From: Mobula hypostoma
Lineage: Eukaryota
Reading direction: 5' to 3'
NCBI RefSeq assembly: GCF_963921235.1
Contig: NC_086110.1
Coordinates: forward strand, 12,834,001-12,898,000
Length of the DNA: 64,000 nt
The notes under the pieces were generated by a model. The model searched no databases, was not told the origin of the DNA, and saw only the letters and a list, made by a program, of their open reading frames with translations. Made by a program: the position numbers and the translations under genes. The number at the start of each line of letters is the position of its first letter. Position 1 is the first letter of the stretch. This document shows positions 1 through 56,519 of this stretch, piece by piece.

Positions 1-1787
1 TTTGGAGGTGCCAGGTATATTCTCCTACTGATCAATAGAAAGAAATGATGGGAAGGATAGTCAAGGGTAAAACAAAGTGCAGATGTCGTATCGGTTTACA
101 GGACATGTTACAAACATTGGCCAGAATGTATTTAAACCACCAGATTTTTGTTAAATGAAACTTGTTGTCAGCTTAAAAAAAAGGCATTCAAACTGTTGAA
201 AGTACTGATAACTGTGGGCTGGAGTGGTGAAGGTGTTGCAAGCGGAGCGAAAATAACCTTTTAATTAACGGCTTCTCCCTGCATTAAAACAACTTTATCT
301 CGCCAATAGCGGCGAATCTCTGGATGCTGTTTTTTTTCAGCGTCTAAGGAATGTTGAAATAAAATCATTGGGGTGTATTAACTGGAAAGTACAGTAGTTC
401 CTTTTTCTTGGAATAATTGGAGAGTGTGCGATGGATCAGAAGAGGACCAGATTATGAATGAGCATATCAGACATTATCACGGTGAATGGCCGGCCGGGCA
501 GTAGAGAGAGAGACGGAATGGCTGACTCTGGCTTACAGTATTCCCGATCCTTTCCTTCAGTTTCTTACCTTTATTTTTTTTCAGTGACAATTGGCTCGAA
601 TGCATCAAAAAATATCGAAGAGAAGACGAAAATGACCTCTTACCTTCCCAACTCATATATATATGATACCGATTGTCATTCTTTGTCTGGATGCAAGGAA
701 TGAAACGAAGCAATGCCTTGGGTCTGCGGTCATTGGTGGTCTACAGCTCTGAACTACAACTGGATTCTCAGCTTCACAGCTTCCTTGATGTGTTTACTGT
801 ATATCTGCGCTCAGTGTATGTTTGCTTTGAAGTTTGGATGGTGATGTGTTCATGGAATTGTGAAGCTGGCGAGCTGCGCAAGTCAGTCTGTCAGCACCAT
901 TTTTTTAGTCTATGAAAGTAATTGAAAATCCAGCATCCAGTGACTCATTGAATCAAACGATTGTAACATAAACTAGTGATGTATTCATCAGTTATCAATT
1001 TTCGATTGCTACCGCTTTTCACAAGGTTTATGTCAACGTCCTTCAAGATTTCCCTTTTTGATTCATATAGAATTTGAACGGCAAGAGCCTATCTTGTCCC
1101 ACAGAAGAATTAACGTTTCTTTCCTTACTTAAAATGAAATTTAGCAAAATTTAATCAGGAGAGTAGAGAAATTATTGAAGTAGACTAAATGTTTGGCTAA
1201 CTCACAATACAAGCGCATTTTTCTGTTATTTCTGTCTGATTTCCGCAACCTGATTCATCTATTGATCTCACCGGTGGTTACTTCGCTTCGTAAGAGCTCA
1301 TTACGCAATAGTTTTGTAAGCTGATATTTATGAGGGGAGAGAGGGAACGTCGACTCAGACCATGAGAGGCCTGCGTCGGGCATTTACATGTCTTACAAGG
1401 CGCAGATTTGAAGTCTGTGTGGGGCGTCACTCTTCGCACAGACACTAAGCAAGTGCTTTGCTCAAGGACACAAACACGCTGCCACAGCTGAGGCTCGAAC
1501 TAGCAACCTTTAGATCAATAGACGAACACCTTAACCACTCGGCCACGAAAAGATCAAAGATAAAATTTTTGACTCTTTTTAAATTGGCACCGCTGCCCTT
1601 GCTTTTGCAAATGAAAATATGTTTATCGATAGGGTCAGAAAGAAATTCCACCCGTCTATCACAATGTCCACTATTCTTATACTTAAATTTCAGTATTATT
1701 TCAGCCGTCGCTACTTAGTCTACCCTGCAGCACATAAGGGGAAACAATCCGTTGGCCATGTATTCCTTCAGATTTTCAGCTTCTCCT

Positions 1788-2596: not shown

Positions 2597-2643
2597 TTTA
2601 ATTGTTTTTTTATACAATGCTTGTTTTATATCTCCCCGTCCCT
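2597..2643 (-). other. Ancestral end of gene A displaced by a CR1: last codons (RDGEI*) and ATTAAA poly(A) signal
   Basis: Joining the flanks at the TCCCT duplication gives GTA AAA CCA AGG GAC GGG GAG ATA TAA. ATTAAA lies at 2597-2602 on the minus strand. Confidence 0.6.
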
Positions 2644-4997
2644 AAGTGTGTGCAGGATGGATTCCTGTCACAGTATGTTGACAGGCCGACTAGGGGGAAT
2701 GCCATACTAGATCTAGTATTAGGTAAAGAACCGGGTCAGGTCACAGATTTCTCAGTGGGTGAGCATCTGGGGGACAATGACCACCGCTCCCTGGCCTTTA
2801 GCATTATCATGGAAAAGGATAGAATCAGAGAGGACAGGAAAATTATTAATTGGGGAAGGGCAAATTATGAGGCAATTAGGCTAGAACTTGCGGGTGTGAA
2901 ATGGGATGATGTTTTTTCTCGGAAATATACTATGGACATGTGGTCGATATTTAGAGATCTCTTGCAGGATGTTAGGGATAAATTTGTCCCGGTGAGGAAG
3001 ATAAAGAATGGTAGGGTGAAGGAACCATGGGTGACAAGTGAGGTGGAAAATCTAGTCAGGTGGAAGAAGGCAGCATATATGAGGTTTAGGAAGCAAGGAT
3101 CACATGGGTCTATTGAGGAAAGGAGGTTAAGAAGGGGCTGAGAAGAGCAAGAAGGGGGCATGAGAAGGCCTTGGCGAGTAGGGTAAAGGAAAACCCCAAG
3201 GCATTCTTCCATTATGTGAAGAACAAAAGGATGACAGGAGTGAAGGTAGGACCGATTAGAGATAAAGGTGGGAAGATGTGTCTGGAGGCTGTGGAAGTGA
3301 GCGAGGTCTTCAATGAATACTTCTCTTCGGTATTCATCAATGAGAGGGAACTTGATGACGGTGAGGACAATATGAGTGAGGTTGATGTTCTGGAGTATGT
3401 TGATATTAAGGGACAGAGGGTGTTGGAGATATTAAAATACATTAGGACGGATAGGTCCCCGGGGTCTGACAGAATATTCCCCAGGATGCTCCATGAGGCA
3501 AGGGAAGAGATTGCTGAGCCTCTGGCTAGGATCTTTATGTCCTCGTTGTCTACGGGAATGGTACCAGAGGATTGGAGGGAGGCGAATGTTGTCCCCTTGT
3601 TCAAAAAAAGGTAGTAGGGATAGTCCGGGTAATTATAGACCAGTGAGCCTTACGTCTGTGGTGGGAAAGCTGTTGGAAAAGATTCTTAGAGATAGGATCT
3701 CTGGGCATTTAGAGAATTATGGTCTGATCGGGGCAGACAGCATGGTTTTCTGAAGGGCAGATCGTGTCTAACAAGTTTGATGGAGTTCTTTCAGGAGGTG
3801 ACCAGGCATATAGATGAGGGTAGTGCAGTGGATGTGATCTGTATGGATTTTAGTAAGGCATTTAACAAGATTCCACATGGTAGGGTTATTCAGAAAGTCA
3901 GAAGGCATGGGCTGGAGGGAAGTTTGGCCAGGTGGATTCAGAAATGGCTTGCCTGGAGAAGGCAGAGGGTCATGGTGGAGGGAGTACATTCGGATTGGAG
4001 ATTTGTGACTAGTCGTGTCCCACGAGGATCAGTTCTGGGACCTCTACCTTTCGTGATTTTTATTAATCACCTGGATGTTGGGGTAGAAGGGTGGGTTGGC
4101 AAGTTTGCAGGCGACACAAAGGTTGGTGGTGTTGTAGATAGTGTAGAGGATTGTCGAAGGTTGCAGAGAGACATTGATAGATTGCAGAAGTGGGCTGAGA
4201 AGTGGCGGATGGACTTCAACCCAGAGAAGTGTGAGGTGGTACACTTTGGAAGGACAAACTCCAAGGCAGAGTACAAAGTAAATGGCAGGATACTTGCAAG
4301 TGTGGAGGAGCAGAGGGATCTGGGGGTACATGTCCACAGATCCCCGAAAGTTGCCTCACAGGTAGATAGGGTAGTTAAGAAAGCTTATGGGGTGTTAGCT
4401 TTCATAAGTCGAGGCATAGAGTTTAAGAGTCGTGAGGTAATGATGCAGCCTATAAAACTCTGATTAGGCCACACTTGGAGTACGGTGTCCAATTCTGGTC
4501 ACCTCAATATAAGAAGGATGTGGAAGCATTGGAAAGGGTACAGAGGAGATTTACCAGGATGCTGCCTGGTTCAGAGAGTGTGGATTATGATCAGAGATTA
4601 AGGGAGCTAGGGCTTTACTCTTTGGAGAGAAGGGGGATGAGAGGAGACATGATAGAGGTGTACAAGCTATTAAGAGGAATAGACAGAGTGGATAGCAAAC
4701 GCCTCTTCCCCAGGGCACGACTGCTCAATACAGGGGGATATGGCTTTAAGGTAAGGGGTGGGAAGTTCAAGGGGGATATTAGAGGAAGGCTTTTAACTCA
4801 GAGAGTGGTTGGTGCGTGGAATGCACTGCCTGAGTCAGTGGTGGAGGCAGATACACTAGTGAAGTTTAAGAGACTACCAGACAGGTATATGGAGGAATTT
4901 AAGGTGGGGGGTTATATGGGAGGCAGGGTTTGAGGGCCGGCACAATAATGTCGGCCGAAGGGCCTGTACTGTGCTGTACTATTCTATGTTCTCTGTT
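2644..4997 (+). mobile_element. CR1 LINE, 5-prime truncated ORF2 (end of endonuclease plus RT), frameshifted
   Basis: PTRGNAILDLVL, YRPVSLTS, DFSKAF, GSVLGP and FAGDTK motifs, microsatellite-like tail, and a TCCCT flank duplication at 2639-2643 and 5002-5006. Confidence 0.95.
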
Positions 4998-5006
4998 CGA
5001 ATCCCT

Positions 5007-5063
5007 TGGTTTTACCTTTGCATAGACAACATGTTCGTCCTGGCGCCTGACCTGGTCAATAAC
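5007..5063 (-). pseudogene. Formerly coding tail of gene A beyond the TAA (VIDQVRRQDEHVVYAKVKP) with canonical ITIM VVYAKV at 5013-5030
   Basis: In frame with exon 7 after one TAA. Continues across the CR1 insert to RDGEI* at 2626-2643. Confidence 0.7.
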
Positions 5064-5126
5064 TTAGTTTTCTCTCGTGTTTGGTGTAGCATAGGCAAGG
5101 TTATGTTCAACTGGCGCTAGTCCAGC
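5064..5126 (-). CDS. Gene A exon 7: terminal cytoplasmic exon AGLAPVEHNLAYATPNTREN*
   Basis: Acceptor atatctttttaacag|GCT, phase 0. Contains the degenerate ITIM-like LAYATP; TAA at 5064-5066. Confidence 0.75.
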   Translation of the reverse strand, partial: AGLAPVEHNLAYATPNTREN

Positions 5127-5465
5127 CTGTTAAAAAGATATAGTTAACTCTATTCGTGGCGAGTCAAATGCAATTCAAATTCCATAATGAGAAAATGAGT
5201 ATTAAAACATAAGCGTAAATGAGTAAAATGCGGCATAATAACATTCTAACATCAGTAAATGATATTGCCATGTACAAACGTTTTATGTTATTTCAGAAAC
5301 GGTAGGAAATGTGTTTTCCCTAGCGCTGAAAGTCTTTATGATCTTTTAAGACCGAAATTGATTTTCAAGCACCATTTATTCTACGAGTAGGGTGAGTTTC
5401 TCATCTGCTGTCATCTTTTTTCTTTCGCAGTTATTTCCTTCTCCCTCCATTCCCCAACAGCTTAC

Positions 5466-5500
5466 GCAGGGACAACTGTCACCTTTCTTTTCCTCGGACA
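5466..5500 (-). CDS. Gene A exon 6: cytoplasmic (VSEEKKGDSCPC)
   Basis: Acceptor ccatag|TG, donor TGC|gtaagc, 35 nt, phase 1-0. Supplies exactly the phase change needed to enter the tyrosine-motif frame of exon 7. Confidence 0.6.
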
Positions 5501-5635
5501 CTATGGACTATTGAAGCAGCGTTGTGCAGGTCAGTTCGTCATCGGTTCTCATACACTCACAGACATATCCTTTCTGCGGTCGTAATTGATCATAATATTC
5601 CTCTATCAATTCCTCTCAGAAGCAAAAAGTAAAAC

Positions 5636-5692
5636 CTGTATCACCAACCGGTTCTCCGCTCTGACGTGCTTCCTCGGAGGTTGTTTTAATAC
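5636..5692 (-). CDS. Gene A exon 5: cytoplasmic (GIKTTSEEARQSGEPVGDT)
   Basis: Acceptor ttttttaatccattag|GT, donor CAG|gtttta, 57 nt, phase 1-1, open in frame with the TM exon. Confidence 0.65.
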
Positions 5693-5874
5693 CTAATGGA
5701 TTAAAAAATACAACACCTTAAATAATAGTGGTAACGTTGGAAAAGTTGAAGTTGCGCAGTGGATTGCAATCAAATTTCTTGCCTAAAGGTGTAACTCCTG
5801 ACAGCTGTCCAAAATATTATCGGCGCACACTGTGGCCATGAAATGTGTTGTGCATGACCCTTCATGAATGTAGT

Positions 5875-6058
5875 GGATCTAGATTTTGATTGAAAGAGTA
5901 GATGGGCAGTAGCTTGTGGCTACGGGGGTCAGGGGGTATGGAGGGAAGGCTGGGGCGGGGTTCTGAGTTGGATGATCAGCCATGATCATAATAAATGGCG
6001 GTGCAGGCTCGAAGGGCCGAATGGCCTACTCCTGCACCTATTTTCTATGTTTCTATGT
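5875..6058 (+). mobile_element. CR1 3-prime end fragment in the gene A TM-cytoplasmic intron
   Basis: 3-prime hairpin plus (ttctatgt) tail. 5958-6058 is identical to 41500-41600. Confidence 0.8.
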
Positions 6059-6342
6059 TATATCTCAAAAGAACGAAAATATGACAGTAAAAGTATTATT
6101 ACTTGTGTAAAATCGCCGCAGGAAGTCACAGCCTGAAAACCCCAGGTGTCTGAAAATCGTAGGTACAAGGGATGATTGGAGAACTTGAGCGAGAATGTAA
6201 AATTATCCTGTTATTTATAATTAGTATTGTCGAATGTGAATCCGATAATGCCTTGGAAATCTTGATTCTCTCATTATCATTTCCTCTTTCAATCTGCAGA
6301 GGTAATAAATGGAAATACTTGTCAAATCATTCATGTTCTTAC

Positions 6343-6450
6343 CACGTTTTGCCTTAACTCCGATTCTTATCAAAATTATAATCAGCGTTACAATTGCCAG
6401 TCCGCCCAATGCACTTCGAAAAATCAAGATTTTATTGCTGTCTTCCGGAT
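6343..6450 (-). CDS. Gene A exon 4: transmembrane exon DPEDSNKILIFRSALGGLAIVTLIIILIRIGVKAKR, with Arg near the extracellular side
   Basis: Acceptor ttttttttaacag|AT, donor CGTG|gtaag, 108 nt, phase 1-1. About 21 hydrophobic residues followed by a basic stop-transfer segment. Confidence 0.9.
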
Positions 6451-6910: not shown

Positions 6911-7204
6911 CTTGCTCCTGGATGTAGCTGAAATTGGCAGGCACCGTGAGGGAGACATGCGACACCAGACAGGTGTAAGTATCTTTTCCCAAAGTAGACT
7001 GCGTGATTTCCAATAAACTAAATGCTTCGTACAAGCCGTCCACGTTCCGGTTTGTCACACTTTCTATTCCAGTGCGAATTTGCTTGTTATTTCTTTGCCA
7101 AACGATTTCTAATTTCTCCGGGTAGAAACAAGCCGTTTTACAAAGGAGCTTTCGAGGAGACGAAAACCCTCCAACAGGAACAATTTCCACTGGAGTTGGA
7201 GGAG
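6911..7204 (-). CDS. Gene A exon 3: C1-set Ig constant domain
   Basis: Acceptor ctcaag|CT, donor CAAG|gtaag, 294 nt, phase 1-1. C1 hallmarks LLCKTACFYPE, IVW, NVDGLY, YTCLVSH. Confidence 0.95.
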
Positions 7205-12203: not shown

Positions 12204-12509
12204 CGAACACAGTGAACTTGGTGCCACCTCCAGTCCCTAAGTATTGTTCCTGAAACTTTACTGCACAGTAATACAGCCCAGAGTCGCTGAATTTGACATT
12301 CCAGAGTACAAGTGTTCCTCTTCCCCTTTCTACAGTAAATTGTCTTCTGCTGTCCCTTTCTAAAAACCCCTTCTCGCCTTTCCTCCACCAACGAACGTCA
12401 ACGGTATCGTTTGTCAGTAGTAATTTGCAGAACATCGTAACATTCGCACCAACCGGGACGTTCAGGTCCCGAGGGAATTGAGATACTTCGTTCGCCGTTA
12501 ATTTGACGA
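12204..12509 (-). CDS. Gene A exon 2: single-exon V(J)-type Ig domain (non-rearranging)
   Basis: Acceptor ggcag|TC, donor TTCG|gtgagt, 306 nt, phase 1-1. Shows B-strand Cys (TMFC), C-strand WW, DSGLYYC and a J-like GGGTKFTV inside the same exon. Confidence 0.95.
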
Positions 12510-12712: not shown

Positions 12713-12767
12713 TTAGCCAAGTAATAGCCAGAAGTGCTATGTACGAAACCGTAAACTTCTCCGCCAT
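12713..12767 (-). CDS. Gene A exon 1: signal peptide MAEKFTVSYIALLAITWL (phase 1)
   Basis: ATG at 12767, 18 hydrophobic codons plus 1 nt, donor A|gtatgc. A paralogous 55-nt exon lies at 32963-33017 at a similar distance from its V exon. Confidence 0.8.
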
Positions 12768-22745: not shown

Positions 22746-22882
22746 AGAATTGTATTTCAAGTAATCAATTTATACTGACATTTTAACTGTCAAACACGAC
22801 AGTTGTAAATCTTCCATTGTATCATTTATCATTTCTATCATTAGAACTAAAAAAAATAAACGAGAAAATGTAAGATTCTTAC

Positions 22883-22984
22883 CATGTTATGCGTTTACGA
22901 TCAATCTTGAGACAATTATAACCAGACCTAAAATTACCAGTCTGCCCAACGCCCACACTATAATCAGTCTTTTCTGCGTTCTGT
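22883..22984 (-). CDS. Orphan TM exon with central Arg and an immediate stop (DRTQKRLIIVWALGRLVILGLVIIVSRLIVNA*)
   Basis: Acceptor cacctag|AC, donor CATG|gtaag. Aligns with gene A TM: GGC GGA CTG becomes GGC AGA CTG, and AAA becomes TAA at 22887-22889. Confidence 0.8.
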
Positions 22985-24693: not shown

Positions 24694-25328
24694 TGTCATG
24701 GTCCGGTCCGTCAAGTCCTTATTCCAGTTCACGGTCCGGTCCATCGACCCTTGCTCCAGGTTTTCCTGTCTACCCTGTGACTGTTCTTGAGCTCCAATTG
24801 AGGCACCTGATGCCAGTTGGGGCTGGCTGCATAAATACCCTCAGAGACCAGGGCGTGGCTGCTGGATTGTTCTTGTCCTATTCCTTGTATCCCTTCCTCT
24901 GCCTTCTGTTTCCTCGCCGGTAGCCCTGCCTTGTCTTGCCGGTAACTCTCGCCTTGCCTTGCTTTGCCAGAAGCCTTGCTTTGTCTTGCCGGTAACTCTC
25001 GCCTCACCTGAATTTCTCGTCTCCCCTTGCATTGCCTGAAGCCTTGCCTTGTCTTGCTGGTAACTCTCGCTTCGTCTCGCCTGCAGTCTTGTACTGGAGC
25101 CACTCTTTACCTAGCTCCCTTCCTGTCCCTTGCTTCCGCCCAGGTAAGCCAGGCCATCTTACCATTGCCTGCGGTTGGTTCTGTCCCTTCCTGTACCTTG
25201 CCTCCGTCGGGTAAGTCAGGCCGTCTTGCCATTACCTGCGGTTGGTTCTGTCCCTTCCTGTCCCTTGCCTCTGTCGGGTGGTAATCCACGCCCTGCCCAG
25301 GAGAACTGCGCCCTGACCAGGAGGAGGC

Positions 25329-26270
25329 TGCCTGGCCTCAAGCCTGAAGACCCCATCCTCCTGCCTGGCCTCAAGCCTGAAGACCCCAGCCTCTTGCCTG
25401 GCCTCAAGCCTGAAGACCCCATCCTCCTGCCTGGCCTCAAGCCTGAAGACCCCAGCCTCCTGCCTGGCCTCAAGCCTGAAGACCCCAGCCTCCTGCCTGG
25501 CCTCAAGCCTGAAGACCACAGCCTCCTGCCTGGCCTCAAGCCTGAAGACCCCAGCCTCCTGCCTGGCCTCAAGCCTGAAGAGTCCCGCCTCCTGCCTGGC
25601 CTCAAGCCTGAAGAGTCCCGCCTCCTGCCTGGCCTCAAACCTGAAGAGTCCCGCCTCCTGCCTGGCCTCAAGCCTGAAGAGTCCCGCCTCCTGCCTGGCC
25701 TCAAGCCTGAAGAGTCCCGCCTCCTGCCTGGCCTCAAGCCTGAAGAGTCCCGCCTGCTGCCTGGCCTCAAGCCTGAAGACCCCAGCATCCTGCCTGGCCT
25801 CAAGCCTGAAGAGTCCCGCCTCCTGCCTGGCCTCAAGCCTGAGGAGTCCCGCCTCCTGCCTGGCCTCAAGCCTGAGGAGTCCCGCCTCCTGCCTGGCCTC
25901 AAGCCTGAGGAGTCCCGCCTCCTGCCTGGCCTCAAGCCTGAAGACCCCAGCCTCCTGCCTGGCCTCAAGCCTGAAGAGTCCCGCCTCCTGCCTGGCCTCA
26001 AGCCTGAAGAGTCCCGCCTCCTGCCTGGCCTCAAGCCTGAAGAGTCCCGCCTCCTGCCTGGCCTCAAGCCTGAAGAGTCCCGCCTCCTGCCTGGCCTCAA
26101 GCCTGAAGAGTCCCGCCTCCTGCCTGGCCTCAAGTCTGAAGAGTCCCGCCTCCTGCCTGGCCTCAAGCATGAAGAGTCCAACCTCCTGCCTGGCCTCAAG
26201 CCTGAAGAGTAAAGCCTCCTGCCTGGCCTCAAGCCTGAAGAGTCCCGCCTCCTGCCTGGCCTCAAGCCTG
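25329..26270 (+). repeat. 33-bp minisatellite (ctcctgcctggcctcaagcctgaagagtcccgc), about 28 copies
   Basis: Directly visible. Generates the 345, 349 and 312-aa repetitive ORFs. Confidence 0.95.
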
Positions 26271-27560
26271 TAGCCTCTAGCCTCCTGCCAAGCCTCGGCT
26301 CAAGTCCGTAGCCTCTAGCCTCCTGCCAAGCCTCGGCTCAAGTCTCTAGCGTCAAGCCTCAAGCTTCAAGACTACAGCCTCCTGCCTCCTGCCCAGCCTC
26401 AGTTCAAGTCTCTAGCCTCAAGCCTGAAGACTCCAGCCTCCTGCATCCTGCCAAGCCTCGCCTCTAGCCTCAAGCCTCTAGCCTGAAGACTCCAGCCTCC
26501 TGCCTCCTGCCAAGCCTCGCCTCTAGCCTCAATCCTCAAGCCTGAAGACTCCAGCCTCCTGTCTCCTGCCAAGCTTCGCCTCTAGCCTCTAGCCTCAAGT
26601 TTCAAGCCTGAAGACTCCAACCTCCTGCCTCCTGTCAAGCCTCGCCTCTAGCCTCAAGCCTCAAGCCTGAAGACTCCAGCCTCCTGCCTCCTGCCACATC
26701 TCTCCTCTAGCCTCAAGCCTGAAGACTCCATCCTCCTGCCTCCTGCCAAGCCTCGCCTCTAGCCTCGAGCCTCAAGCCTGAAGACTCCAGCCTCCTGCCT
26801 CCTGCCAAGCCTCGCCTCTAGCCTCAAGCCCCAAGCCTGAAGACTCCAGCCTCCTTCCTCCTGCCAAGCCTCTCCTCTAGCCTCAAGCATGGACTCCAGC
26901 CTCCTGCCTCCTGCCAAGCCTCGCCTCTAGCCTCAAGCCTCAAGCCTGAAGATTCCAGCCTCCTGCCTCCTGCCAAGCCTCGGCTCAAGTCTCTAGCGTC
27001 AAGCCTCAAGCTTCAAGACTACAGCCTCCTGCCTCCTACCAAACCTCGGCTCAAGTCTCTAGCCTCAAGCCTCAAGCCTGAAGACTCCAGCCTGCTGCCT
27101 CCTGCCAACCCTCGCCTCTAGCCTCAAGCCTCAAGCCTCAAGCCTGAAGACTCCAGCCTCCTGCCTCCTGCCAAACCTCGCCTCTAGCCTCTGGCCTCAA
27201 GCCTGGACTCCAGCCTCCTGCCTCCTGCTAAGCCTCGCCTCTAGCCTCAAGCCTGGACTCCAGCCTCCTGCCTCCTGCCAAGCCTCGCCTCCAGCCTCAA
27301 GCCTCAAGCCTGAAGACCCCAGCCTCCTGCCTCCTGCCAAGCATCGCCTCTAGCCTCAAGCCTCGAGGCTGAAGACTCCAGCCTCCTGCCAAGCCTCACT
27401 TCTAGCCTCTAGCCTGACGACTCCAGCCTCCTGCCTCCTGCCAAGCCTCGTCTCTAGCCTCAAGCCTGACGACTCCAGCCTCCTGCCTCTTGCCTAGGCT
27501 CGCCTCAAGCCTGAAGCCTGAAGACTCTAGCCTCGTCCTGCCTGCCTGCCAAGCCTCGTC
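26270..27560 (+). repeat. Degenerate higher-order repeat of 5-7-bp modules (cctcaag, cctgaag, actccag, cctcctg, cctctag)
   Basis: Directly visible modular repeat related to the 33-mer. Confidence 0.9.
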
Positions 27561-28189
27561 CTGTCTAGTTCTGGGGTTCGAGCCAGAGGCAAGACCCAGA
27601 TACTGGGTCCTTGTCCAGTCTCTGGCTCGGAGTCCAAGCCGGAGCTCCTAGCTCTCTTGTCCAGCGCTGTTCCAAGTTCCCGGATTCCATGTCCATGTCC
27701 TTGCCCTCAGCCTGTATCCTAGTCCTGTCCCTAGTACTTAAGTGTATGTATCTTGCACTTGGGTCCGTTCCCAGCCACCGCCGTATGACACAAAATTCTT
27801 TTTCACCAACTTTTCGAACACCATTCTTAACTTTTCCAACTCCATTCGTACTCCATTTTCAGCGAACCCTGAATCACATCCATGATTGACATCCATTGTG
27901 AAAACTCTTCTAAATTGTTTATGTACTGTAGATCTCCGAGGCACATAAATAGTCACAGTCGTGGCTTGACCATTCACGGGTCGAGGCGGCGGAAGTGGAA
28001 GGCGCTGCTTGGGCCGACTGCCTGCCCCTCTTCCAAGGGAACGCTCGTGTCCGCCTGTTCTTGGAGAGGGAGCATGCGGTCGCAAAAGACACTTCGGGGG
28101 ACTTCCGGGAGCGGCGCCCCCCCCCGCCCACCGGAATATTGATTGTCTATTAGGCAGCAGTAACCATATTTTAATTTCTGTGTACTCAC

Positions 28190-28642: not shown

Positions 28643-28944
28643 CTATTCAAAAAAAAAATTCCAGCCTTGGCGGATTTAGGTTTTCAAACACGAGAAAGTC
28701 TGCAGATGCTGGATATCTAAAGCAATACACACAAAATGTTGCGGAACTCCGCAGACCAGGCAGCATCTATGGAATAGAGTCGATGTTTCGGGCAGAAACC
28801 TTTCATCAGGATTTCGTTTTAAAATGGTACTGTCGACTGTCAATCGGAAAATGCTGTCGAAGTCTTATTTCACTACTGAATGCAATATAGCTATCAACTG
28901 CAGAGCAAACTCGGAGCACTTCACAAATCTTTTAATATTCTTAC

Positions 28945-29046
28945 CATGTTTTGCCTTTAATCCGATTGTTGTCGCACTTATTATCGGAGCTACAATTATC
29001 ATTCCGGCCACTGCATATCCGAGAATAAGTCTTTCATCAGTGCTTT
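28945..29046 (-). CDS. Orphan TM exon, uncharged (ESTDERLILGYAVAGMIIVAPIISATTIGLKAKH)
   Basis: Aligns with the gene A TM exon; donor CATG|gtaag. The homologous acceptor reads TG (29053-29054), but an in-frame AG lies 6 nt downstream. Confidence 0.75.
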
Positions 29047-30781
29047 CTAGATCAGGTGAAAAATAAGAAACAAACTCAAGGAATGAGACTCAGGAAGACA
29101 GAGGAGTTATAATGTATCATTCAATCCGTAGTCTGCAATAAATGCAAAAAAAAAACCCAAATAAATCAAGTTTCATAATGGTTATTTGCACAAAAGATAT
29201 TTAAAGCAAGAAATATTTTATTTTCTTTTTTGTTACAGTATACCGGGCAGTTTGACATCAGCTTGAAAATTTCAAAATCTCTAGTATGTTCTGGAAATAT
29301 TGACACGCATCTAAACAGTTTCTAGACGAGAACAAGAGGAACTGGCTTTTATAAGATTGTGCATTTAGCATAGTAGAACTATCAAAGGAACTGCATTGAA
29401 GCTTAAGTTAAATCCATGATTAAGTACAAGTGACTAGATACTGGACGAAGACAAGTAGAGAGAAAGTAGCATTTTGGGATTAAGACAAAAGTGGTTGCAG
29501 AGAAAATTCCAGATTTAAGGGAACAGACCGCTGAGATATAATTTGCAGCAAATAGAGGAACACAACTAAAAGTAACTACGGAATCAATAGATCTAAATAG
29601 CAGGTATGAAAACAAGAAAACATGACTATGATTTGGCTTTGTATCCTTGAATCATGTTTTCAGCATTGTAGTTGATGCTATGTTGTAAATCCACTTTCGT
29701 GTCTGATGTTTAGATCCTTAAATTTCCACGTGTTTAAAGTCCTACCAATTTTAGCCTCTAATATACACAGTGACTTTAAATCCACAATACTCTGAGGTAG
29801 ACTACAAACCGCACGGTGCAAAATTTATACTCATTTACAACTTGAAAAGCAGGCTGGTATCGCGGCTCTGATCTTATATGTGGCTGGTGGAGCTGCGTAT
29901 TTAGTATATTGCCAGGTGGCTCTCTCACTGAAACATAGCTATTTCAGCAAGGTACTTTATTCATTTATTTCAGCGATATTAGATTCATCCATTTCAATAT
30001 CTACCAACAAGAGATCCCACTTATTGTGGGTGTTAGCTTTTGAAACTCTGCTTTTTAACTTTCAGGCAAAGCACATTTTTTGCATATGCATGGAAAGAAA
30101 ACTGTACATTCAGAGTTATCTCAACAGCCTCCCAAGCAATTCTCCCTCTTGCCGCTTTATAGCTCCCCGACAGCATATTTCCACGTCTTATATGCCTTCC
30201 TAATAACACACTGTAGTTACACATCAGCCTTCGTGTTTCCTTCAGAATGCTGTCTGACCCCTTTACTGGTCACAGAGTTTTGTTTCCCAATCATTGGAAC
30301 AAATAAGTACAGATTTTCTCACATTATACTCCTCTTCCATCCTGGCTACGATCAGGGTTTGTTACTTTAATAAATTTGCGAATTTTGCCCTTTCATCACT
30401 TCGTCTTGTATGAACATCCTTATTTCATGCCCTTGGCATTTATGAATCTATTTATTCCAATGCGTTTCCCCGCGTTCTATCGTCATAATCTAGATGATAC
30501 ACGAAACTTTACACACAAAGCTCACATCTTTTCCTCTTGGGAAACAAATGTTCCTGAAATCCAACTCATTGGTCCATCATCTGGTTATCTACCCTGATAT
30601 CTTCTTGTGTACTTTCGAGATCTATGCTTACATTTTAATGCTTTTGTGTAATGTCCAGGTATGTGTCCAAGCAGCAGATGCATTTAAGGATTTTGTTTTA
30701 ACATAAATTAAACTGCAATAAATTAAACTGGCTTGTTAGCAGTTTAAACATAACTTCTCAATATGAATAAATACAGTTCAC

Positions 30782-32462: not shown

Positions 32463-32768
32463 TTAACACAATAAGCTGGGAGCCACTTCCGTTTTCGAAA
32501 ATTTATTGCTGACCTTTCACTTGACAGTGATAAACTCCGAAGTGAGCGGCACTCGCATTCAGGAGGGTAAATGTCCCCCTGCCCCTCTTTAAGTAGAATT
32601 GTTTTCTGCTGTCTGGTACTAGAAATGCCTTTTCGCCCTTCCTCCACCACGAAACTTCAGCCGGATCTTGTAATATTGGAAACCTGCAGGACATGGAAGT
32701 GGTTCCGCCTCTGGAGACCTTTAAAATTGGAGGGAATTGTTGCACTTTGCTCGAAGTTGCTTTTACAG
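32463..32768 (-). pseudogene. Gene B exon 2: V(J) Ig domain paralogue with an in-frame TAA in the CDR3-equivalent loop
   Basis: Acceptor ttttgacag|CT, donor TTAA|gtaagt, 306 nt. Ungapped alignment to gene A V (about 44/101 identical by hand). TAA at 32503-32505; J-like GSGSQLIV follows the stop; DSG has decayed to HFG. Confidence 0.9.
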
Positions 32769-53164: not shown

Positions 53165-56100
53165 TTGATCATACTGCTCTTTATGAACTTGATATGACAA
53201 AAGGCCTCACACCTTCCAATGTTAAGCTGAATTTGCTGGTGTATCGGCCAATGCCTTAATCTATCTACACCACGTTACGGAATTAAAGCATCCTCAGCTA
53301 TTTTCTTCACTTCTGGAAGTCAGCCCTTTGGACAATGCTTGGATCAGAGCTGTGATGTGCTCGGTAGTATAATAGTTCCTGCGAAACTCATACTGGGCAT
53401 CCTCGTGTTGGTTTATGGTGAATCAATGCTGGTTAATTGGAGTTTCAGTGACAGCTTCTAACGCCTTATTGATGATTGAGTGATCGGATGGAAATATGTT
53501 GATTGGATTTGTTCTCTCCTAAATGAGGGAACTCATCGTGTTCCCCCCCTTTATTCATAGCATCCACCTCCCTTACGATTCATTCAACCTTCATCTCACC
53601 CTTTGCTTTCCAAGTCCACAATGCTACAGTTTGGAAGCACCCTAAATTGGTGTAGGGCATCTTAACTTGGTTGCCATTTAGTTACCTTCCAAAACACTTC
53701 AGCAAATTACAATAATTCGGTCATATACTGATAACTCGTGGGCTGTTTTATTTTCCAAATAATGTAAAAACTCAAAATCAATGAAGCAAGAGGAAAATTA
53801 TAGAACTATCAGGATGTGTGATCACAGGCAAAAAAAAACTACCCATCTTTGTCAGCTATCATTTAAGTGCATCCTTCAGACGAAGTGTGGTAAGGGGGTG
53901 GATGAGTAGGCGAATGGTTATAGAAAGGTGAGAATTCAAAGCTATGATTACAACTGGATCATTTGCGAATTTAATGAGCGGGAAATGAGACTTGAAAAAC
54001 CTTTCATTCACATAATCTTTCAATTTTTCATCGTTTTCTCTGGAGTGCTAAGTTTGTTTCAAGGAATTAGTGTGGTCGTGAGTTGTCAGACATCGAATTT
54101 CTTTCTTTCCCGACATCTCCCCAAAGTCGTGCTGCACCTAATCCTGCACCATCTACTTCCAGTAGTCCAATCCATTTTATAACGACAGGAAAATGTATAA
54201 CTAATTGATATCCATGCTGCTCTAATAATCAGACTCAACATTCTGCACCAGTGTTAATACTTTTAACTTCATGAGCACAGACTATTCAATATTGGGAAGT
54301 TACTAAAAAGAAAGACTACTTTGGTTCCTAAAGGCGAATTTTCTAAGCAATGATAGATGAGTAAGCGTGACTCTACTATATGGTTCTACTTTCAAATCAC
54401 GTGTACATATGACTCTTTTTTTGTTACTGTGGTTAAATTAGCCCAAATATATCGCTGTAATGGGACCAAAAACTGCCTTTTCTATTTACCCTGCTCTGCT
54501 TCAACCTAGGTTGTGACACATCGATGAAAATGCGCATTTCGTTCAGCTTCTGGATGCCAGGAATTTCCCTTTGTTTTAATATAGATACAGTATATTTTAC
54601 AGCAAAGGGATCGAAATCAAGTTCAGGAATGATTTGAACGATATGCTTTTATTTAAAATAAAAATAATTAATTGATATATTGAATCTGTAGTTACAGCAA
54701 TATCCTTTATGTACGGGTCATCACGAGAGGCAGTGAGAAATTTGTTTACATCATCTTTATTGATTTAATTTAAAGCTGACGGAAGTGAACTAGACTAGTT
54801 TTGTTATTGAATTGGGGACTTGTGTTTGTTTTCCAAGATGAAAGTCACATTTAAAAGCGAGAAGAACAGAACTTCCTTCTTGCAGGCAGTATTGCTTTTC
54901 CGGTTCTCCTGGAGGATTGTGAATGTTGATTGACTGGGGTTACCAAAGGAGAAAGTCGATAAATCGTATGTGGAGGGAATTGATGACTATGAAGTCTTAG
55001 TACAGAACATGAGATTAGACGGTGCAAATCAGCATTTATTATATTGAATAGCGCAGCAAATTCGGCACAGCCTTTGTATTCTGAAATTCGTAGTACAAAG
55101 ATCAAAGTTCAAAGCTCTGCTTCTTTGAGTCTGTTGAAGTACCGGTAATTCAAAATCAGCGAGTCATCCATCCTCCAGTGAATACGCAAAATAATCATTT
55201 AAAAATAATATTTACTAGCCCACAATTTAAAACTGATGCCAGTTGAAACTGATTTAGTATTTTTTCCATACTTTTCCTTTTCTGCTTCAAATTGAATGTT
55301 AATGCCAGGGGCGTTTTTTTGCCGGATAAAACAACAAAAGTTTATCTCCTTTTAAACGCAGTCGGATTAAGAGTGGAAGTTACTGCTTATAGTAGCATTG
55401 ACAGTGCTAATTATTTGCAATACGTTTATAGCAAAGCTTCGCTTTGAGCTACTTGTGTAGGATCGCTGATGACAAAGTTGACCTGCCAAGAATATGGGGT
55501 TTGTTCCAAAGTTGAAGTTGCCTACACGCCTATGACTTTTAATTGGCCGATGGAATACTGTACTGCACTTCGGCGGAGCACAGATAATACCGCACATGAT
55601 AACTATGTAAAAGTATCTTTTATTCTATATGATAAAAATGAAGTACTTCGTTCTATGATGCAGGAGCTGCTTCCCTTTGTCACGAGTTCAGAAATCCGTG
55701 AATACTCTGGTCTCAGGGAGCGTTAACTAATACTATGTTTTCATGGGTCCTGTATTGATTGCAGGAGAGCACACCGGAACAAAGATAGGGGAAAACATCG
55801 GCAGTGTAGTAACATTCCGGAGACTACAAATCGATTTATCAAATCGACCACAATGTCGATTTATTTCCATTAATAAAGAACCATTACGACGGTACAAAGT
55901 CAAAATTGCGCTCATGTTTCTACATAGTTTCTAAGAGTACATTTCATTACAACAGTGCTTTTTTTATTATTATTTACACCAGTTCTTCGGCTCTGCTTGT
56001 GAATTGACGGCGTGTTTTTCCTCAAAGGCGTCGGCCTTTTGTAAAAACTTTGTGGTCTCTGAAGTTACCGTGTCATAGGCAAAGGTATGTTCAAATGGTG

Positions 56101-56519
56101 ATTGAGCAAATTATCTTTTCAATTTTGATTTTAATTTAAAAGAAACTTAAGGCAGTGTGTGACGTGGCTCATACAGTTTCAAAACGAAGAGCCAAGCCTG
56201 AAATTCCAACAAGCAACATGATGGAAAAAGGTACTCTCACGGTCTTATAGGTTTTTCCACCACAGAATGTCTGGGCTTGCACGAAGTTGCTTTGCTTAAA
56301 ATCTTGAGAAGCGTTTCGTTAAAAAATTCAGACATAGATAATTCCAGGGACGCTGCACTGACGTAATCTTCTTCTGTTTCATTTATCCAACCCTTCGCCT
56401 GTTATTATATTAATCATTAACGTCAGAGCCACGAGAATCGTGGAGACATTTTAAAATAGGAGCTCAATAAAGGATAGTTCACGGCACGAGTTAAGCATAA
56501 AATAAATAACCATTTTTCA

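Follow-up and report, generated by a model that had tools for sequence, protein, structure and literature searches.

The question raised by this locus of the lesser devil ray, Mobula hypostoma, is whether gene A is an inhibitory receptor that has become an activating one, or simply a gene that is falling out of use. A sequence-only reading of the window (the whole stretch of 64,000 nucleotides analysed here, which is repeat-rich vertebrate DNA) had proposed the former, with pseudogenisation as the alternative. The elements on which it relied are indeed all present on the minus strand: an arginine codon (CGA, 6418-6416) within the putative membrane sequence ILIFRSALGG, the altered tyrosine motif LAYATP at 5099-5082 with its proline codon CCA at 5084-5082, a TAA at 5066-5064 and, in the same frame beyond this stop, the ITIM VVYAKV at 5030-5013. 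In our opinion, gene A may best be explained as the short-tailed, arginine-bearing, adaptor-coupled activating partner of a paired receptor in an elasmobranch V(J)-C1 family. We would put the probability of this reading at about 0.4.

Gene A and the family to which it belongs

Gene A is a model already annotated in RefSeq, since the leader, V, C1 and membrane exons of the window are identical to those of XP_062923614 (P0169) of M. hypostoma. All its exons lie on the minus strand. The leader exon (12713-12767, ATG at 12767-12765) encodes MAEKFTVSYIALLAITWL, identical to the N-terminus of P0169, and ends in phase 1. The germline-joined V(J) exon at 12204-12509 (Pfam V-set, E 2.1e-12) holds its domain in one piece, including the closing J-like motif G-x-G-T-x-(L/F)-x-V, which here reads LGTGGGTKFTVF. 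It is followed by a C1-set exon at 6911-7204 (Pfam C1-set, E 3e-12), in which 94 of 98 residues are identical to the M. birostris orthologue P0165, and by an exon for stalk and membrane span at 6343-6450, which encodes ...DSNKILIFRSALGGLAIVTLIIILIRIGVKAKR and whose start the RefSeq acceptor places at 6441. According to Pfam and hydropathy, the product has a single C1-set domain, then a stalk and one membrane span. The first cytoplasmic exon, GIKTTSEEARQSGEPVGDT, lies at 5636-5692; the M. birostris model P0165 includes it as a spliced exon, but continues past its donor.

Searching first with the V exon and then with its best full-length match brought up a multigene family in rays, sharks and a chimaera with the architecture V(J)-C1-membrane span-tail. 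The RefSeq names given to its members vary (SHPS-1/SIRP-alpha-like, NCR3 ligand 1-like or NCR3LG1-like, Ig lambda-like). Long-tailed members, of 344-350 residues, carry four tyrosine motifs over two exons, a TAYASL-type and an IIYSQT-type motif in one and LTYAAL and xLYADV in the other. The nearest relatives of gene A by sequence are members of this family, and it falls inside a ray clade with support of 100; judged by these relatives, gene A belongs to the elasmobranch V(J)-C1 'SIRP-like' receptors. A query with the membrane and first cytoplasmic part of P0165 matched only P0165 itself and P0169. Our literature searches found no paper on this family, nor on paired receptors in it.

The name 'SIRP-like' needs some qualification. 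In mammals, SIRP-alpha is inhibitory, SIRP-beta is activating via a membrane lysine and DAP12, and SIRP-gamma is tail-less. The family of gene A resembles this group in its domain order, a C1-set domain coming after a V domain that carries a J-like motif. The two also agree in that the long forms have tails with tyrosine motifs and are paired with short-tailed members, and many models of the ray and shark family bear 'SHPS-1-like' names in RefSeq. SIRP-alpha and SIRP-gamma are indeed among the solved relatives (E 1e-13 to 1e-11), with Ig and UrIg2 constant domains scoring equally well or better. Unlike mammalian SIRP with its two C1 domains, however, gene A has one C1 exon between the V and membrane exons; since membership requires V plus two C1, we do not count gene A among the mammalian SIRP.

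The germline-joined VJ exon and the split leader liken gene A to chicken PRARP, which is a non-rearranging VJ-C1 gene. The UrIg and UrIg2 genes of elasmobranchs are also non-rearranging VJ-C1 genes (PMC12227049), and gene A shares with them the germline-joined VJ exon, the split leader and the C1-type domain that follows. UrIg2, however, has 9-11 C domains and has not been described in paired inhibitory/activating forms; on the domain number (one C1 in gene A) we reject gene A as a member of UrIg/UrIg2. In organisation, the family also resembles teleost NITR, LITR and NILT and Xenopus CEACAM, which are non-mammalian multigene families with both ITIM-tailed and charged-span short-tailed members (PMC5112662). 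Those families differ from that of gene A in domain types and lineages.

Remnants of an inhibitory tail

Downstream, the three ancestral cytoplasmic exons are all present in order, two of them as dead relics. The second one survives at 5009-5116 (minus strand). It was found by tblastn with P0014 and P0102, in which AAVEHTTEYAPLNMRQSKVFRKGLQKEERIIYSQTK of P0014 aligned with APVEHNLAYATPNTREN*VIDQVRRQDEHVVYAKVK of gene A, and again by a profile of this exon, built from seven intact relatives and searched against the six frames of the window with the stop read as X. The profile match, at 5116-5009, covers 34 positions ungapped, with the X at the stop (E 1.9e-6). The TAA takes the place of a conserved lysine and the proline of LAYATP that of a conserved leucine, just as had been supposed when LAYATP was described as a changed ITIM and the TAA as cutting the tail.

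VVYAKV past the TAA is more than a chance string. ITIM-like strings occur in the six frames of the window at 1.74 per 1000 residues, which gives 0.037 expected in the 21 codons past the TAA, and the match to the profile of seven relatives is the stronger argument. Because the upstream exons of gene A all end in phase 1, the frame of LAYATP and VVYAKV can be entered only via the second AG (5118-5117), ten bases beyond the first (5128-5127). The frame entered through the first AG gives GWTSAS and a stop, and does not align with the relatives.

The last cytoplasmic exon, at 774-909 (minus strand), had escaped the sequence-only reading; it is matched by its own profile with E 5e-13, the last seven profile positions being in another frame. 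Its second codon is a TAA (907-905). Two tyrosines are lost, for it has LTCAAR where relatives have LTYAAL and LSADI where they have LYADV (Tyr-to-Cys, Leu-to-Arg and Tyr-to-Ser changes). Further, five extra bases (ATACA) before GTA AAC ACA TCA AGG AAG CTG TGA amount to a frameshift, which moves the old C-terminus (VNTSRKL-stop) to the other frame. A LINE and a SINE at 2600-5008 separate the two relic exons; the reverse-transcriptase ORFs of the LINE are on the plus strand, and read depth at 4700-5063 is that of a repeat.

With both tail exons recognised by profiles, it is almost certain that gene A lost its tail from an ITIM-type ancestor, and the inhibitory ancestry suggested by the sequence-only reading is upheld. 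We disagree with that reading on how the tail was lost. It held that a single TAA cuts off the tail and that the conversion is caught here. The donor of the first cytoplasmic exon (CAG|GTTTTA) is degenerate, with only its GT agreeing with the consensus. Read-through of this donor leads to GFTFCF and then a stop at 5618-5616, which is how the M. birostris model P0165 ends. The M. hypostoma model P0169 ends by reading through the membrane-exon donor. Both Mobula models in RefSeq terminate upstream of the TAA at 5066-5064, and this codon may never have been translated. Given the second stop, the two lost tyrosines, the frameshift, the degenerate donor and the RefSeq models that end before the TAA, the comparison with intact relatives indicates a tail that has long been dead and was lost in several ways, rather than a conversion caught in the act. 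With any of its four possible 3' ends, gene A has 34-50 residues past the membrane and no usable tyrosine motif (ITIM/ITSM).

As regards the reads, two contigs of the second species span the TAA at 5066-5064, which is absent among the differences listed, and the contigs of M. hypostoma (organism A) begin at 5090, short of it.

Two more stretches of the minus strand may be mentioned here. A further relic of a second cytoplasmic exon lies at 55982-56101 (FEHTFAYDTV...EEKHAVNSQA; profile E 0.08-1.1), its first tyrosine kept and its second changed to Asn. Past the membrane-exon donor, at 6224-6342, 39 codons are open to the same stop in Mobula and in Hypanus sabinus P0033, with 30 of 39 identical between the two, and the RefSeq model of Hypanus P0033 also reads through the membrane-exon donor. 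The openness may reflect neutral drift at a slow pace, or else the stretch is a genuine alternative terminal exon.

A derived arginine in a mosaic gene

The membrane exons closest to that of gene A belong to P0036 (M. hypostoma) and P0033 (Hypanus), a third being an orphan exon at 29053-28943. In place of the FRS of gene A, these have LGG or LGY, with glycine at the arginine position in all of them. Since the closest exons carry glycine, the arginine is, on this comparison, derived, as one of three adjacent derived residues (LGG of P0036 to FRS), and the supposed gain of a charge at this place is thereby borne out. FRS is common to gene A and its M. birostris orthologue P0165; at about 1.4% DNA divergence, this sharing indicates only that the change predates the split of the Mobula species.

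The same register, four residues before a conserved glycine pair, holds Arg-Ser in P0149, P0189, P0145 and P0136, and arginine without serine in P0051 and P0179. P0149 is a Mobula protein whose Hemitrygon orthologue P0188 has glycine at this place, hence a second Gly-to-Arg change. Finding the same arginine in ITIM-intact paralogues had been thought to speak against a conversion, and this objection holds in part: the distant relative P0145 has arginine in the gene A register together with a LAYASL tail, and the close paralogue P0153 combines Glu-Arg at that place with an intact tail. Within the family, the outer part of the span is hypervariable and accepts E, ER, K or D, even in tail-bearing genes. 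An association of arginine with a motif-less tail was not significant in a phylogenetically paired test (3 concordant against 0-1 discordant independent pairs, p 0.25), and 14 of the 27 family models that lack the arginine are also without tyrosine motifs.

Hydropathy places the arginine at position 5 of the best 21-residue span but outside the best 19-residue window; since the latter leaves it out, the arginine may be located at the interface rather than in the membrane. In NKp46, NKp30, Fc-alpha-RI and LILRA, which are coupled to FcR-gamma or CD3-zeta, the arginine sits close to the outer end of the span. On the outer flank of type I membrane spans, basic residues are infrequent.

The minus strand of the window holds two orphan membrane exons of the same type as that of gene A. 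The one at 28943-29053 has glycine at the arginine position, and its acceptor AG has become TG. The other, at 22881-22979, has an arginine in mid-span (ALGRLVIL) and a TAA two codons before the donor.

Gene A has an ITIM-bearing partner in M. hypostoma. This is P0194, which is identical to gene A at 97 of 102 residues in V (95%) and 88 of 98 in C1, and has the full tail (TPYASL, IIYSQT, LTYAVL, ALYADV). The ectodomain tree unites gene A with P0165 and the ITIM-bearing P0160 in a clade with support of 97, nested in an ITIM-type ray clade with support of 100. The membrane exon has 27 of 33 residues identical to P0036, which is of another clade, as against 14 of 33 to the partner type. Judged by these affinities, gene A is a mosaic, with the ectodomain of one lineage and the membrane exon of another, and the idea of a conversion made purely in place is not supported.

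The V exon has a history of its own. Its identity is higher within species (97/102 and 95/102) than between orthologues (91-92/102), and five species-specific residues are common to both genes of each species. Since this is so, the V exon has evidently been homogenised with the inhibitory partner within species by gene conversion. C1 identity, unlike that of V, follows orthology, which argues that C1 has not been converted since the species split; concerted evolution is, on these identities, confined to the V exon. At the same time, V changes faster than neutral DNA between the Mobula species, with 11 replacements against 3.2 expected neutrally (P 0.0005). Homogenisation of V together with faster-than-neutral change is, as we read these comparisons, the pattern of paired receptors.

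In macaques, activating KIR consist of a KIR3D ectodomain joined to the arginine-bearing membrane and tail region of KIR2DL4, and they use FcR-gamma (PMC8102735). Like macaque KIR3DS, and activating KIR and Ly49 in general, gene A has an ectodomain nearly identical to that of its inhibitory partner; like KIR3DS, it appears to have obtained its membrane/tail region from a different lineage by recombination (PMC8102735). It also agrees with activating KIR and Ly49 in the arginine of its putative span and in the loss of ITIMs, adaptor use and expression being only predicted in its case. Unlike KIR, which have C2-type Ig domains, gene A combines V(J) with C1, and does so in a cartilaginous fish.

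Activating partner, decoy or dead gene

Gene A descends from a gene with the four-tyrosine inhibitory-type tail of the family. If it is an activating partner, the tail-less receptor would bind the same ligand as the inhibitory partner and would signal via an ITAM adaptor whose acidic membrane residue pairs with the arginine; candidate adaptors are of the CD3-zeta, FcR-gamma or DAP12 type. That gene A couples to an adaptor through its arginine we put forward tentatively, at somewhat less than even odds. A survey of 2014, by now old and based on thin data, found no FcR-gamma in sharks (PMC4016189), which counts against such coupling.

The same survey is in favour of a different view, namely that gene A is expressed as a tail-less, non-signalling competitor or adhesion molecule in the manner of SIRP-gamma, its arginine being an interface residue that recruits no adaptor. 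Conserved short-tailed members with an uncharged span do exist: P0163 and P0164 of Hemitrygon and P0166 of Hypanus all end in ...RCQNEETTK and have the span LILSCVVGG. Because these are conserved, tail-less forms are, to judge from the models, a standing class in the V(J)-C1 family. The tolerance of the outer span for E, ER, K and D in tail-bearing genes, and the 19-residue window that leaves the arginine outside, point in the same direction. However, three adjacent replacements gave gene A the Arg-Ser that at least four other family lineages have in that register, and one of these recurrences is the second Gly-to-Arg change within Mobula. The rarity of basic residues on the outer flank of such spans also argues against an arginine of no special role. 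We consider such a decoy unlikely.

It is also possible that gene A is a pseudogene, the whole gene being in disuse with the tail as its first sign, and V remaining intact because gene conversion from the functional partner overwrites it. The V exon is, after all, demonstrably converted within species, and the divergence of C1 and the membrane exon between the two Mobula species is roughly that of neutral DNA. Further, the two RefSeq models have different ends, both of them the result of read-through at a donor, and the cluster is littered with dead pieces (a stop-bearing V exon and the orphan membrane exons of the window). Gene A of M. hypostoma alone has an extra cysteine in C1 (TACFYP, codon 7130-7128, minus strand), four residues past the canonical one, where relatives have Ala or Ser. 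RNA-like reads, from runs of which none is recorded as RNA, point the same way: gene A-specific RNA was seen in neither of two small runs (tissue unstated), although the paralogue P0014 is present there. In the M. hypostoma run, all depth over the C1 exon carries six letters diagnostic of P0014, which translate to A26, S54, V61, P71, W72 and I76, that is, the sequence of P0014/P0151. Neither run shows any depth over the membrane exon or the first cytoplasmic exon, and one M. birostris run gives thin, unspliced cover at 5005-5190 and 5334-5600.

Against disuse of the whole gene stands the uneven distribution of decay. There are no disabling lesions in the leader, V, C1 or membrane exons or their splice sites; the reading frame is open, the ATG is present and GT/AG are intact. 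The 244 nt of the relics contain 3 stops and frameshifts, and the 450 nt of the C1, membrane and first cytoplasmic exons contain 0. If the latter had decayed equally, 5.5 lesions would be predicted, and the probability of none is 0.004 (0.15 for the membrane and first cytoplasmic exons alone). Since decay at the level of the relics is improbable there, the upstream exons have, on these counts, been preserved over most of the period since the loss of the tail. C1 is unconverted since the species split, and the derived Arg-Ser fits a motif that recurs in the family. On balance, we find it somewhat unlikely that gene A is a pseudogene, and more probable than not that it remains a coding gene in use.

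Mammals, birds, frogs and bony fish all have well-studied paired inhibitory and activating receptors. If gene A is expressed and its arginine recruits an adaptor, the design principle of paired receptors would reach back to cartilaginous fish; if it is not expressed or not adaptor-coupled, gene A is an instructive example of a half-dead gene in a cluster that turns over fast. In either case its relics are a clear fossil record of inhibitory origin. One may speculate further that rays possess true paired inhibitory/activating receptors built on an antigen-receptor-like V(J)-C1 scaffold, in which gene conversion would hold V alone close to that of the inhibitory partner as it changes faster than neutral DNA, and in which the activating form would be made repeatedly by the same Gly-to-Arg change. 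Taken as a whole, this larger proposal is unlikely to hold. If it were true, the coupling of arginine to an adaptor and the arms race of paired receptors would be at least as old as jawed vertebrates, and paired receptors would be based on the type of gene that gave rise to antigen receptors.

Two other features of the window deserve a brief description. A second V(J) exon at 32464-32766 (minus strand) is 58-65% identical to P0033 and P0036 and has one in-frame stop (GQQ*IFENGSGSQL); it probably belonged, as a V exon now dead, to the neighbouring gene lineage. Finally, GC-rich tandem arrays occupy 25196-26419 and 26245-27568, with a 33-bp unit repeated at least 29 times and, after it, an irregular array of about 59 bp.
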